A DNA stretch of 64,000 bases from Pavona decussata (taxonomy: Eukaryota): NCBI GenBank assembly GCA_977016875.1, contig CDRNST010000354.1, positions 992,001 to 1,056,000 on the forward strand. Direction: 5' to 3'. Below are positions 6,529 to 15,901 of the stretch, piece by piece (the stretch's first letter is position 1; every line of letters begins with the position of its first letter). Under the pieces are notes generated by a model. The model was not told the DNA's origin. It was given only the letters and a program-made list of their open reading frames with translations, and did not search any database. Both the position numbers and the translations under genes were made by a program.

Positions 6529-6787
6529 GGGCCCACTGACGTATCTTTCGCGCGCGCGTTGCTAAGGAAGTCAAAATTCACTTCTGGTTAATGACGTCAG
6601 CATTTTATCAAAAATTTTCATCTGCAGAGGAAAGCCAATCTCGCTCGAGCCCAGCAAATTTGAAACCTTTTATCTCGGTGCAAAGTTGCAACTTTGAAAG
6701 TCATTTCTGTTTAAACAAGTAAAAATGTGAAAACAAAAAGAACAAATTGAGAAGTAGAAACAACAATGGGGTAAGCTGGTGTCCGTA

Positions 6788-9700
6788 ATGTTGGGAAAGA
6801 AGGTAAACAAGCGAAAAAGGCTCTGCACTACAGCCTCAGTTCGTCGCTGGTCGTTGGAGTCTCCCGGAAAAAAAGACACTGCCTGCCAAGTGGACTTTGA
6901 TGTTATTGAAAATGTTGACCTGAAGCTGACAAAATCCACCAATCTTGTAACTGTTAGAATGCAAACTGCCATGTCAACACAAACGGACTGCACGCCGACC
7001 ACTGCAGAGGACGAACCAATAGTAATATCTGCCGAAAAAATTAAAGAGTTATGTTCAAAGTTTACATGCGAACCCTTGAGCGAACCTATCAAGAAACATC
7101 CACCAGAGGAAAGTAACTGCGTAGACAACGAAAAAGAAACTCTCTCTCGGAAGGTAGAAAGCTTTTTTAACCGAAAAAGCCATAAAGTTCAAGAACTTAC
7201 AAGTAACAATTTTGATATCAAGCCGTCTTGTTTTGTCATTTCCGATTCGGACGTTCTGAGAGATGCCGTGCTTTTGGGTAAGTGCAGCGGGTGTGGAAAG
7301 TCGGAAACGCTTGAATTTGTCAAGGAAAAAGAGCCACAGACAGGTGTGCTGAACCTGAAATATATTTGTTATGACTGTAAGAAACCTTTCAGCATCTCGA
7401 GCAGCAATGACATTATTCGCACGTGAACCAGACCAAAAACCTACCTGGCGAACTACGTCCTTCTCTCACTTCTCGTCTGCGGGGAGTATTACAAAGACTA
7501 CGCTCATGTGATGGGAACTCTTGGCATCAGTCATTTCAGCGAAAAGCAGTGGATTCGGGTTATAGAGTGGATTGCTCCAGCCGTGGAACAAATCGCCAAC
7601 TGGAGTGTCATGCAGTCACGGAAAGAGATCAGAGTGCGCGGCGATCAAGACAAGCTGGAGGTCATGTTTGATGGTTTCTATCTCACTCGGGGTCACTACT
7701 CCAACAACTCATCTGCCACTATGCACGACGCCAAAACTGGAAATATCATTGGGTATTCACACAGAACCAAGCGTGGACAAGGTGCCAACTGGGAGGGGAT
7801 GTCAGGAGGGGCGGAAGGAAACATGTTGGATGAGATCCTGGTAGAGCTGATTGAGAAGGAGAAGATGAAGATTGCGAACGCAATAATCGACAAGGATGCC
7901 GCATGCCATGAGGTCATTCTTTCCAGAAGTCCGGAGACCGACATCGTTTACTGCGGAAATCATACTGCAAAGACGTTCCACACAGACTTGGAACGAGTGA
8001 AAAAGACTCCTTGCCAGGTACTCTTTTTTATTTATTTTTTTCTAACCGCATTAGCTCACAAGTTTATCGACGATTAAAACTAGAAAAGTTGTATTTCTAA
8101 TCCGTTTTTCTAATGTGAAAGCTAAAAAAAACCACTTAATTAAACAGCATGTGCTTTGACATGATTATTTCTTCCCAAAAAAAGCGACCTTGTATGAATA
8201 AAGGATCGCTTTTCAACACAAAAATATACTTTTTTATTTTCGAGCGAGCATGCGGACTGCAGAGGGAACAAGAAGTAAATTTTATATCAGCATGCGTTTT
8301 GTTTTTTTGTGACAAAAACTATCTATCTCGATGATAAGCTTTATTTTAGCTATCATCGATAGTTATTACAAGGTAAACAATACCATTTTTTATCCTTCTA
8401 TTTTCTAACGCTTATAAAAGTCGAGTCTTCACCGATCAATTGTTTTTCAACTGTCAACAAAAGCCTCCATATTTTGTTTGTTTTCAATTATAATGAACTG
8501 ATACTTGATTCCCAATTTGCAGTGTAAAAGCCTCGGCCTCCCAAGGTGCAAACGCATGTCAGATGCTATGATTACAAACGCCAAGAAATGCCTGAAGAAC
8601 CTGACAAAGTGCCAAGAGATATACTCCTCCGAAGATCCGATGGGAGGTTTCGGAGAGGCCATCAGGAATTTCTACTCCCATTATACGGATGACCACTCAT
8701 CGACCTGGTGCAGGTTTCACAAAAAGGTGCCAGTAACAATACATTACTTAACGGTTGACATAAAAACTAAAGTGGACATTTTGGGATCCAGGGATCATTT
8801 ATTTATAGGGGGGGGGGGGGGGGTACAGATGACAATGTGAGGGTTGGGGGTGCCATGCTTGACAAACATTATGAACCCTCTGTTAGGTCTCCTTTTTCAT
8901 GAGAAGTTGTACATCACTACATCCAAAAAAAAATCTTTACTATACCTAGTAAAAAAAAATGCTTTGCATGCATGAAAACTGGCAGTTTTGCTGAGAAACA
9001 CTATTTATGTACAGGAAGATGAGGATGGCAAACCCTATCACTGTAAACATGCCTTCAGTTGCCCATCCCAACTGAAAGAATTCAAAGAGGTGTTGGAAAA
9101 AATGGCCACACGACCAGACGAATACATCACAGTTGATGGTCGAGTCACTAACAACATCCCTGAGGGCTACCATGGCATTGCACTGGTGTACAGGGACAAA
9201 AGAATTGACCTGGGCTCTGTGCACTACAAGTGCAAGACAAACATGTCTATACCACACAAGGTAAACAACTATGCAATTTCCAACAAGCTATAATTTAATT
9301 TGTCAAATAATTTATTATACGTTTCATGTATGTCTTATAACAGCTATACATTTTATTATTGCTGATATCAATATTACACCTATTGTACTTTTGTTATATA
9401 GAACATTAGTCCTATATGGATAGCACTTCTTTTCCAACTGCTCTCAATTCCAATGCCGAAGAAAGCTATCGAGTATCTCATTCAGCGACAGGAAGTGTAC
9501 GAGAGGGATGCCAAGAGACGAAGTACACCGGAGCATCAAAAGAAAAGGTTCATTCTTTGTGACATCAAATTTATACCATCTAACTTAGGTCGACAGGGAC
9601 TATGATCATTGTGAGGAGGACTATGAGTCAAGCTTTAAAAAATTACCTGAAAGAAGGCAATGTATGAGAAGAGAAAATTAAAATATCACCACAGCCCCTG

Positions 9701-14200: not shown

Positions 14201-14436
14201 GGGCCTGTTTACATGGAGGTGGGGGACCCTGGGTAGGTGAGGTAATAACCGGTCCATATAGTTATGAATGCACTCTTTAGACAAGACCTGCAAGACTGAT
14301 ATCAATAAATTTCTGGACAATAACCTTGAGAAAGTTCACCCCAGTAAGATTGCATGTAAATGCTGGCTATTCTTTGATCACAGATGGGTCAGAACCTCAC
14401 CTACCTTGGTTCCCACACCTCCGTGTAAACAGGCCC
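14201..14436. mobile_element. Harbinger-type MITE
   Basis: TIRs GGGCCTGTTTACATGGAGGTG / CACCTCCGTGTAAACAGGCCC, with internal ggtaggtgaggt/acctcacctacc. Confidence 0.65.
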
Positions 14437-15901
14437 TTAATATAAACTGTTGTTGTAAATAATGTAAATACTGGTTCAAGTACCAAACAGATACATTTGC
14501 AGTATTGATTGTAAAAAAGTAAGAGTAGCTAGTTTTAAAACTGAATAATAATTTGAATATTTTAGAGTGGTTACATATCTTAGCAGTTTCATATAATTTG
14601 TAAACATTGTAAATATAGATGGACAAAATAATAATTATATATCAAAATAAAACAACATTATTTGGAGGGTACTGACAATTGTAGCTCGGTCTTTCCGTTT
14701 GCAAATTCAATAATTTGATCCGTTTGGAGAAAAATACAAGAGCGAGTGCGATGAAGATAAAAACTTCAGGATAGGCTTTTCATGCTATTTCATATGGCCA
14801 CCCTGGCATTTATAAAAACATGCAGCACTGCAGAAAAATGCCCCACTGTATAAAATGAAAACAGTCAACAAGTCGTTAATTAGTATCCGTTGTTTTACAT
14901 ACGAAAACAAATTCAGACATGCACACAAACATAGAAATGCAAGCAATAAATCATCCTTATGAACGTGACCATGCATCGAAAAACCTTGCTGCAAATCTAT
15001 GTTGAAATCTACCTTGTACTTGCACACCACGAACTGAACATTGTACGTCCATTTGCATTAACACGGGTGGCATAATTATGACTTGGCAATGCTTTATACT
15101 GACAGTAAAACTTGTGCTTTCCTTACCTTAGCACGCAGATTTCATCTTGGTTTCCACTGGTTAAACATCCCGAAAGTAAGCCAACTTCAAACTTCGTCCA
15201 GCTTTTCCTCCATCCCACATCGATTAAATTCCATGAAAAAGTTGTAGCTATGTGACGCTCAAAAAGCTGTTGTTATCTTTAGAAACGTTTTCATCCAGGA
15301 CAAAGTCAGTTTCGGAAAGTTCCAAAAACATCAACAGCCACAGAGAGATTTTTCCCGTCCCTCGTGGTTGTTCTGATCGAGAGTTCCCCATGCTCGCACG
15401 GCTTTCTGGTCAAGTGAACTGCGCATGCTTCGACAAAATTACTTCCGGTTTACAAAAACTCTAAAATATTCGCCGTTTTTGTTTAGAGAACAAGTTTTCA
15501 GGAGACAAACTTTGTAAAACGGATGTACAAATATATCTATGCATTCCTTCTCGGAAATTTTGTCCTCCTGTCAAAAATGTGAGCATTTAAAACCTTGAAA
15601 CCTCTTTTAAAAACATGTTTTTTCCAAAATGATACAAATTCGATACATTAGCACATGTAAATTTAATTAAAATTAACAAATTCACAGAAAAACTACCAGC
15701 GAATGAATAAACATAAAAGATTATAGACTTTTTCTGTTTTGGTCACGTGATCATGGGCGTGGTCTGATGACGTCATTTTTCCATTTGAGACCGATGTCCA
15801 TAGGCATACCTGCAAAACGACTACTGATCGTCAAAAAGCGATCACGGAAACTTTCCTTGAATTTCCTTAGCAACGACCTTGAAAAATACGTCAGAGGGCC
15901 C

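Follow-up and report, generated by a model that had tools for sequence, protein, structure and literature searches.

A non-functional nine-exon Kolobok transposon of Pavona decussata with a predicted transposase-DEDDh exonuclease fusion

Within a 64,000-nucleotide stretch of the Pavona decussata genome (NCBI GenBank assembly GCA_977016875.1, contig CDRNST010000354.1, positions 992,001 to 1,056,000 of the forward strand; hereafter the window), a Kolobok element of 9.4 kb occupies positions 6529-15901, between GGGCCC...GGGCCC inverted ends and TTAA duplications. This element is very probably a non-functional copy of an autonomous Kolobok transposon, the nine-exon gene of which specifies one protein of ~960 codons comprising a zinc ribbon, a DDE transposase, an acidic linker, a DEDDh exonuclease of the TREX/Plex9 type and a short PML_C-like tail. 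The initial annotation of this DNA had considered such an architecture possibly novel; however, it has already been published as KolobokD (Kojima & Bao 2022, Mob DNA 13:24, PMC9587614), a lineage equipped with a DEDDh (DnaQ) exonuclease and recorded from molluscs, arthropods and cnidarians, for which degradation of DNA intermediates from the 3' end during transposition has been suggested. The present copy is a well-preserved further example of that architecture and not a discovery. Together with its sister elements, it presents a transposase-exonuclease gene that selection has maintained as a unit across coral genera and whose exon order recurs in a hemichordate. Moreover, it demonstrates that a Kolobok transposase can carry the DEDDh module while lacking the CCHC finger that is reported after the first catalytic D in KolobokP, E, D and 5, and as near-invariant in KolobokD (PMC9587614), and it supplies exactly defined splice junctions for RNA testing.

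The ends of the element are sharply delimited. Within the 64-kb window, TTAA+GGGCCCNCTGACGTAT is found at two sites and no others, 6525-6544 on the plus strand and 15886-15905 on the minus strand; similarly, the terminal string TTAA+GGGCCC[A/T]CTGACGTAT has two occurrences in the window, in opposite orientation, and the chance expectation for a TTAA-plus-terminus string is none (100 shuffles). The cores of the inverted repeats agree at 15 of 16 positions, and a gapped alignment extends the match imperfectly to ~50 nt, including the subterminal GTTGCTAAGGAA. When the element and one TTAA are deleted in silico, an unbroken minus-strand reverse-transcriptase frame (...GKEEFKFVQYAHN...) is obtained that reads ...IELGKEEFKFVQYAHNLTVFV... 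across the empty site, and the right flank of this restored frame is recognized by Pfam RVT_1 (expectation value, E, 6.5e-14); therefore, the element was inserted precisely at a TTAA within a retrotransposon lacking long terminal repeats (non-LTR). Kolobok transposons are distinguished by TTAA duplications, 5'-RR/YY-3' termini and a C/DxxH signature in the transposase (PMC9587614). The termini found here, GGGCCC...GGGCCC, are of the 5'-RR...YY-3' form, and TTAA is duplicated on both sides; TTAA likewise stands at the 5' end of a relative in the same assembly (C382) and of a copy in Desmophyllum pertusum, and the terminus TTAA/GGGCCCA... is common to C382, a further relative (C273) and the D. 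pertusum copy.

The exon model was re-derived from the sequence and checked by script, and all searches and domain calls reported below were made exon by exon. Nine exons are in frame throughout, all eight introns run from GT to AG with pyrimidine tracts, and the splice phases are consistent, with AG/A, G/TC, G/CA and G/GC as junction codons. The sole in-exon stop is the TGA at 7424-7426, at which sister copies have an arginine sense codon; exon 1 is 86% identical to an uninterrupted exon-1 open reading frame (ORF) of 426 residues (P0001). In exon 9, the frame is shared with the D. pertusum sister element up to position 12783, and the conserved KGLS.ICC.KLA then follows in another frame at 12794-12844 (E 6e-5). 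With two lesions, the TGA at 7424 and the frameshift in exon 9, this copy is dead. The structural claims of the initial annotation are upheld in detail: it had reported both terminal inverted repeats, both TTAA duplications and nine GT-AG exons joined in phase, had read the TGA as a lesion plausibly derived from CGA, and had suspected a C-terminal frameshift, which can now be placed at 12784-12793 by comparison with D. pertusum.

The transposase half of the gene is contained in exons 1-4. The part of exon 1 that follows the TGA (7427-8017, hereafter exon 1b) matches Pfam PF20700 ('Mutator-like transposase') with E 1.4e-12 and 47.7 bits; the same model scores 1e-86 on ORFs of this genome whose motifs are near-identical to those of Kolobok-1_ADi in the published alignment, and in practice PF20700 is the Kolobok transposase model. 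A search of the ESM Atlas with exon 1b returned PF20700 clusters only. An identity as piggyBac was considered and rejected, the Pfam scan of all exons giving PF20700 and no DDE_Tnp_1_7 match. The motifs FDG, IDKD, CGNH (the C/DxxH signature) and PEG align with the published Kolobok alignment and are kept in seven relatives, and the CxxC...CxxC ribbon upstream of the DDE core is conserved in relatives as well. Between CxxH and the catalytic E, exons 2 and 3 hold the pattern C-x7-C ... H-x3-W-C-x2-H ... H-C-x-H-x3-C, which was matched by eye to the published alignment. In an intronless metagenomic relative of 31% identity (P0040/L073), the equivalents of exons 1b-4 are contiguous and no exonuclease comes after them, which supports the joins from exon 1b to exon 4 and indicates that exon 4 is the end of the transposase proper. 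The CCHC finger is absent from all seven relatives and from this copy, where no Cys occurs between FDG and IDKD; instead, RTKRGQGANWEG replaces ~25 residues where Kolobok-1_ADi has C-x2-C...H-x-C.

The exonuclease half, encoded by exons 5-9, presents ExoI (LYDCEGTGG), ExoII (AHNGFVYDFPLL) and ExoIII (HRALADVQAM) in this order, at spacings of ~100 and ~67 residues and with all five catalytic residues (D, E, D, H, D) in place. These motifs are conserved in D. pertusum and in C33, one of the two copies of a related family of this genome (family B); the other copy, C62, has lost the ExoII aspartate through a deletion of four residues. Pfam RNase_T is the sole or best-placed match at ExoI in four lineages, with E 0.028 here, 0.0023 in D. 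pertusum, 0.0038 in C33 and 0.11 in the hemichordate Ptychodera flava. When the 44-residue exon 7 was searched against PDB, 29 of the 30 listed matches were TREX-type exonucleases, the best being 9L8A (E 6.9e-4) and TREX2 1Y97 (E 0.0031; 17 of 21 residues identical), with TREX1 also among them. Furthermore, seven exonuclease regions verified by Pfam, all taken from KolobokD-type elements of this genome, were used to build a custom hidden Markov model (HMM), which matches exons 5, 6, 7 and 9 collinearly, the matches to exons 5 and 6 being individually non-significant. In this copy, exon 9 is matched with E 5.5e-5 (Z=20), or 0.0024 against 1315 six-frame segments, and exon 7 with 1e-3; in the paralogue C33, the corresponding values are 1e-9 and 6e-7. 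No match to the custom HMM was obtained among the ordinary host RNase_T genes used for comparison. A weak PML_C match was obtained with exon 9 of D. pertusum (E 0.0065), and Pfam PML_C gave none on the tail of this copy. PDB searches with exons 5 and 9 of this copy, and with exon 9 of family B and of D. pertusum, returned no exonuclease match. The motifs named in the initial annotation (CxxC...CxxC, FDG, IDKD, CGNH, PEG, the acidic linker, YDCE, AHNGFVYDF and HRALAD) are all present, the five catalytic residues of ExoI-III are intact as it had stated, and its assignment to Kolobok agrees with the TTAA duplications, the RR...YY termini, the DDE triad with CxxH and PF20700.

Table 1. Coordinates, in the window, of the Kolobok element, its gene and its insertion site
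Feature	Position	Strand	Description
Left TTAA target-site duplication	6525..6528	.	
Left terminal inverted repeat	6529..6579	+	Core GGGCCCACTGACGTAT at 6529-6544; the subterminal part is imperfect and contains GTTGCTAAGGAA
Exon 1	6788..8017	+	N-terminal region, CxxC...CxxC zinc ribbon, DDE core FDG (first D), IDKD (second D), to CGNH
In-frame TGA stop in exon 1	7424..7426	+	Upstream of the DDE core
Exon 2	8523..8726	+	Cys/His-rich insertion between CxxH and catalytic E (putative Kolobok zinc-finger region)
Exon 3	9015..9260	+	End of the putative zinc-finger region and catalytic E (NNIPEGYHG)
Exon 4	9402..9547	+	C-terminal end of the transposase; phase 2 end (AG/)
Exon 5	9771..10186	+	Basic start, acidic linker, ExoI (LYDCEGTGG)
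Palindromic miniature inverted-repeat transposable element (MITE) in intron 5	10272..10439	.	~170 bp; many family copies genome-wide, 75-81% identity
641-bp insert in intron 5	10472..11112	.	Bounded by a perfect 16-nt inverted repeat
Exon 6	11225..11362	+	Exonuclease core, ExoI-ExoII interval; 87% amino acid identity to D. pertusum
Exon 7	11769..11902	+	ExoII (AHNGFVYDFPLL)
Exon 8	12054..12147	+	Exonuclease core, ExoII-ExoIII interval
Exon 9	12512..12795	+	ExoIII (HRALADVQAM), start of the PML_C-like tail; early TAA end created by frameshift
Frameshift zone and out-of-frame tail remnant	12784..12850	+	Frameshift zone 12784-12793, C-terminal tail remnant 12794-12844, then stop; second high-scoring segment pair (HSP) to the D. 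pertusum tail
3' non-coding interior	12851..15845	+	Unique in the assembly
236-bp MITE in the 3' non-coding part	14201..14436	.	50-nt inverted ends, GGGCC...GGCCC, flanked by TTAC/TTAA
Right terminal inverted repeat	15846..15901	-	Core 15886-15901
Right TTAA target-site duplication	15902..15905	.	
Host site: reverse-transcriptase ORF of a non-LTR retrotransposon	15906..16245, continues 6277-6524	-	RVT_1; frame restored in silico

The element is single-copy, no further copy of it having been found in the 602-Mb assembly, and its nearest relatives there stand at 71-72% DNA identity and are decayed or truncated. These results do not bear out the view, expressed in the initial annotation, that the family was recently active, and the sister copies lacking the TGA that it had proposed to look for were not found in this assembly. 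Two of the relatives, C273 and C382, share the terminus TTAA/GGGCCCAC... with this copy and are either truncated or interrupted by numerous stops. A second family, family B (C33 and C62), shows 94-95% identity between its two copies and ~52% protein identity to this copy, and its ends differ (TTAA/CTACAAG...CTTGTAG). C62 sits in a perfectly palindromic site, GGGGGAGAAAC-TTAA-GTTTCTCCCCC (L035 5581-5602, L039 7222-7240), which suggests an insertion at the centre of a hairpin-like repeat. In addition, ~30 copies (G000 loci L019-L033) retain only the first 130-170 residues of exon 1b, at 52-66% protein identity, and neither exon 2 nor exon 3 lies within 1.5 kb of them. These copies probably stem from the amplification of a deletion derivative of some related family.

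Outside P. decussata, the sister element of D. pertusum (GCA_029204205.1; L074, MU825892.1:1162124-1183755, element from 9733) comprises all nine exons, and its aligned parts are free of stops; it bears a frameshift within exon 2 (two HSPs in different frames), and its 3' end was not convincingly found. In P. flava (L075, CM083793.1, reversed), exons 1b-7 are collinear with those of this copy, ExoI FDLEGTGG and ExoII AHNGYAYDYPLL are intact, and the CCHC finger is missing; a relative in the sea anemone Actinostola has the transposase part. At the DNA level, only the exons (72-83% identical) and the 5' terminus can be aligned to D. pertusum, the introns being unalignable. Non-synonymous differences amount to 0.05-0.23 per site and synonymous ones to ~0.7, which is saturated; with pN at 0.15-0.20, the resulting ratio (dN/dS) is ~0.1 in transposase exons and exonuclease exons alike. 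Both halves have been under long-term purifying selection in the sister elements, and the low dN/dS of the exonuclease exons indicates that the exonuclease is a selected part of the transposon and not cargo.

Some further features lie within or beside the element. The 641-bp insert in intron 5 has no further copy in this assembly, and the MITE at 14201-14436 has Kolobok-like ends. A second gene in the 3.1-kb 3' part was considered and rejected, this part holding no ORF longer than 85 residues and showing no tblastx or blastn similarity to paralogues. Contigs of three studies (runs X1, X5 and X7), 95-99% like the window, join 11886 to ~15129 with CCTT microhomology; the variant so joined is absent from the assembly, has a depth of 25-50, above that of contigs over the rest of the element, and in one run begins its similarity at 9528, beside unrelated sequence. 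It is an internally deleted or fragmentary relative. Approximately 3 kb to the right of the element, a 412-residue ORF on the minus strand (18956-20191) carries an MSL2-type CXC domain (PF16682, E 1.7e-7).

The same genome holds many apparently open ORFs of 803-895 residues that resemble the published KolobokD elements (L062, at G000:C49:119809-123369, L066 and L070; others on C177, C144, C331, C104, C273 and C171). The three that were scanned, L062, L066 and L070, each combine a PF20700 transposase containing a CCHC finger with an Exu_RNase_H_like/RNase_T exonuclease and PML_C; because of the finger and the Kolobok-1_ADi-like transposase, they are assigned to KolobokD. The exonuclease part of L062 matches zebrafish Plex9.1 (PDB 9MRC) with E 3e-14 and no TREX at E<=1. 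Both Plex9 and gar PML have DEDDh DNase activity, restrict long interspersed nuclear elements (LINEs) and complement the loss of TREX1 (PMC10123124). The Plex9/PML papers mention no transposons, and the KolobokD paper mentions neither PML nor Plex9. Should the exonuclease-plus-PML_C module of Kolobok transposons be identical with that of the vertebrate Plex9/PML C-terminal exonuclease and Drosophila Exuperantia, these host genes and the transposon module would share a direct origin, either by domestication of a Kolobok exonuclease or by the reverse capture. The kinship with Plex9.1 and PML_C bears on the origin of the PML/Plex9/Exuperantia exonuclease fold, and likewise on the benefit that a TREX-like enzyme brings to a transposon, and it may be the more useful lead.

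Transposase and exonuclease are predicted, from the conserved splice phases, to be translated as one polypeptide. The inspected splice sites of family B and of the D. pertusum copy have the same position and phase as those found here; for instance, the exon 4/5 junction in all three lineages takes two bases from exon 4 and one from exon 5 and continues with N-E-[SC]-K-K, its phase being unchanged although intron 4 measures 223 nt here and ~1.3 kb in family B, and the exon 5 peptide is conserved right from the acceptor site. Similarly, a single uninterrupted ORF of 803-807 residues spans transposase, exonuclease and PML_C in the KolobokD-type elements of this genome. Alternatively, the transposase may end in exon 4, with exons 5-9 giving a separate accessory product from an internal start or promoter, in the manner of KolX. 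Several observations weigh against the main reading: an in-frame internal ATG at 9793 in exon 5 is a possible start of a separate exonuclease; RNA contigs from four runs of four studies on 7400-13000, 95-99% alike, cover the introns and contain no GT-AG joints; the annotated 444-residue D. pertusum product, which spans exons 2-9, has no Pfam match on record; and the exonuclease exons, scanned singly, stay below the Pfam threshold (RNase_T scores of 15-19 bits versus a cut-off of 24). In favor of two products, the D. pertusum locus and that of P. flava have each been annotated as two genes. However, these splits lie inside exon 2 or 3 and not at the exon 4/5 junction, and that of D. pertusum coincides with a frameshift, its second model running from transposase exons into exonuclease exons. 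Family B has kept the peptide upstream of the ATG at 9793 but not the ATG itself, and the RNA contigs, covering introns without GT-AG joints, are uninformative on splicing, so that the RNA comparison over the 9547/9771 junction suggested in the initial annotation speaks neither for nor against it. As the exon 4/5 phase has been kept in three diverged lineages and the KolobokD-type ORFs are continuous fusions, an element with two genes is improbable. Of the earlier claim of one polypeptide, the part that stands is a gene model linking the transposase to a complete DEDDh exonuclease; the joining itself is read from the splice phases, no spliced transcript having been seen. A representative search for full-length annotated fusion proteins gave mostly exon-sized ORFs, and a word search with region 300-627 of P0040 matched only itself. 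The initial annotation had also named the possibility of a captured gene. In a reading of this kind, exons 5-9 would be a fragment of a host exonuclease gene taken up by one copy (Pack-type) and would have no role for the element. The multi-exon, TREX2-like character of the exonuclease part would fit such a capture; nevertheless, all four genomic matches of exon 5 lie downstream of related transposase exons, the module occurs with the same introns in D. pertusum and is collinear through exon 7 in the hemichordate, and dN/dS is ~0.1, so that capture is extremely improbable.

Concerning what the single fusion protein would do, family knowledge suggests that the zinc ribbon and DDE core bind the GGGCCC... 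ends, that the transposase excises the element and integrates it at TTAA, and that the DEDDh domain is a Mg-dependent 3'-5' exonuclease. In intact elements, the tethered exonuclease may act in cis at the transposition complex, trimming the 3' ends of excision or integration intermediates; this is the role proposed for KolobokD by Kojima & Bao and the most likely one here, with roughly an even chance of being correct, and the long-kept covalent fusion to the transposase argues for it. In the main rival reading, the exonuclease would serve no transposition chemistry and, like TREX1 or Plex9, would remove cytosolic or excised DNA (thereby blunting sensing of the cGAS-STING type) or competing retrotransposon cDNA. 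Its TREX2-like and Plex9-like sequence and the reported activity of Plex9 and gar PML against LINEs and in place of TREX1 are in favor of such clearance; the same long-kept fusion speaks against it, and the proposal is rather doubtful. Because selection has kept all five catalytic residues, it is unlikely that the domain is catalytically silent and serves as a scaffold in the manner of Exuperantia. Regarding descent, the element may belong to a separate Kolobok lineage outside KolobokD, which gained its TREX2-like exonuclease independently or by exchange of modules with KolobokD. In support of such a separation, the near-invariant KolobokD finger is missing and replaced as described above; exon 1b scores 47.7 bits on PF20700 versus 290-340 bits for KolobokD-type copies; a genome search with exon 1b found ~30 loci at 23-28% identity and no KolobokD-type locus; the motif words of this lineage are absent from the published alignment (PMC9587614); and ExoII is TREX2-like, in contrast to the KolobokD-type exonuclease that matches Plex9.1 and no TREX. 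On the other side, the residues around the missing finger (R-x-K ... NWEG-S...E) resemble those of mollusc families in which the CCHC motif is present (NWEK--SSKAME), a likeness that suggests the finger was lost; the KolobokD-type exonuclease HMM fits exons 7 and 9 better than it fits host RNase_T genes; and the PML_C-like tail is common to this lineage and KolobokD-type elements. A separate lineage is a serious possibility, with somewhat under an even chance. The fuller proposition, of an unnamed Kolobok lineage without CCHC finger that is spread between stony corals and hemichordates, whose exonuclease was acquired or exchanged independently of KolobokD and whose Kolobok module may be the Plex9/PML/Exuperantia module itself, is unlikely as a whole.

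Among known systems, KolobokD is like this element in its TTAA duplication, its C/DxxH DDE transposase, the Cys/His insertion before E, the downstream DEDDh exonuclease and its presence in cnidarians; Kolobok-1_ADi and Kolobok-1_CGi in the published alignment look like members of it. The similarity of the exonuclease to TREX and Exuperantia is a further likeness, similarity to Exuperantia, TREX and ERI1 having been reported for KolobokD (PMC9587614). Unlike KolobokD, this lineage has no CCHC finger after the first D, its ExoII is TREX2-like where the KolobokD-type exonuclease is Plex9-like, and its relatives reach a hemichordate, a phylum unlisted for KolobokD (PMC9587614). The Kolobok-1_ADi-type transposases of the same genome also differ in being single ORFs of ~800-900 residues with very weak similarity to this element, which has eight introns. 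KolobokE similarly places a nuclease domain downstream of a Kolobok transposase in the same gene; however, that nuclease is PD-(D/E)xK and lambda-exonuclease-like, of other fold and polarity, and KolobokE has the CCHC finger.

With regard to the exonuclease, TREX2 and TREX1 (PDB 1Y97, 7TQP and others) have the DEDDh motifs at similar spacing, and the ExoII LLAHNGFVYDFPLLFAEV found here matches LVAHNGFDYDFPLLCAEL of TREX2; unlike this element, they are free-standing host enzymes without a transposase or a PML_C-like tail, and the significant pairwise match is confined to the ExoII exon. The Plex9/PML C-terminal exonuclease and Exuperantia (with a SAM-like tail; PF22123, PF25244) are approached through exons 7 and 9, which match the HMM of the KolobokD-type ORFs that match Plex9.1, whereas the PML_C-like tail is weak here and cut short by the frameshift. 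Moreover, this element retains the full set of five catalytic residues, in contrast to the pseudo-nucleases Exuperantia and human PML. Finally, piggyBac shares the TTAA-specific insertion and differs in its termini, which are CC...GG as opposed to GG...CC here, and in its transposase, that of the present element being PF20700.

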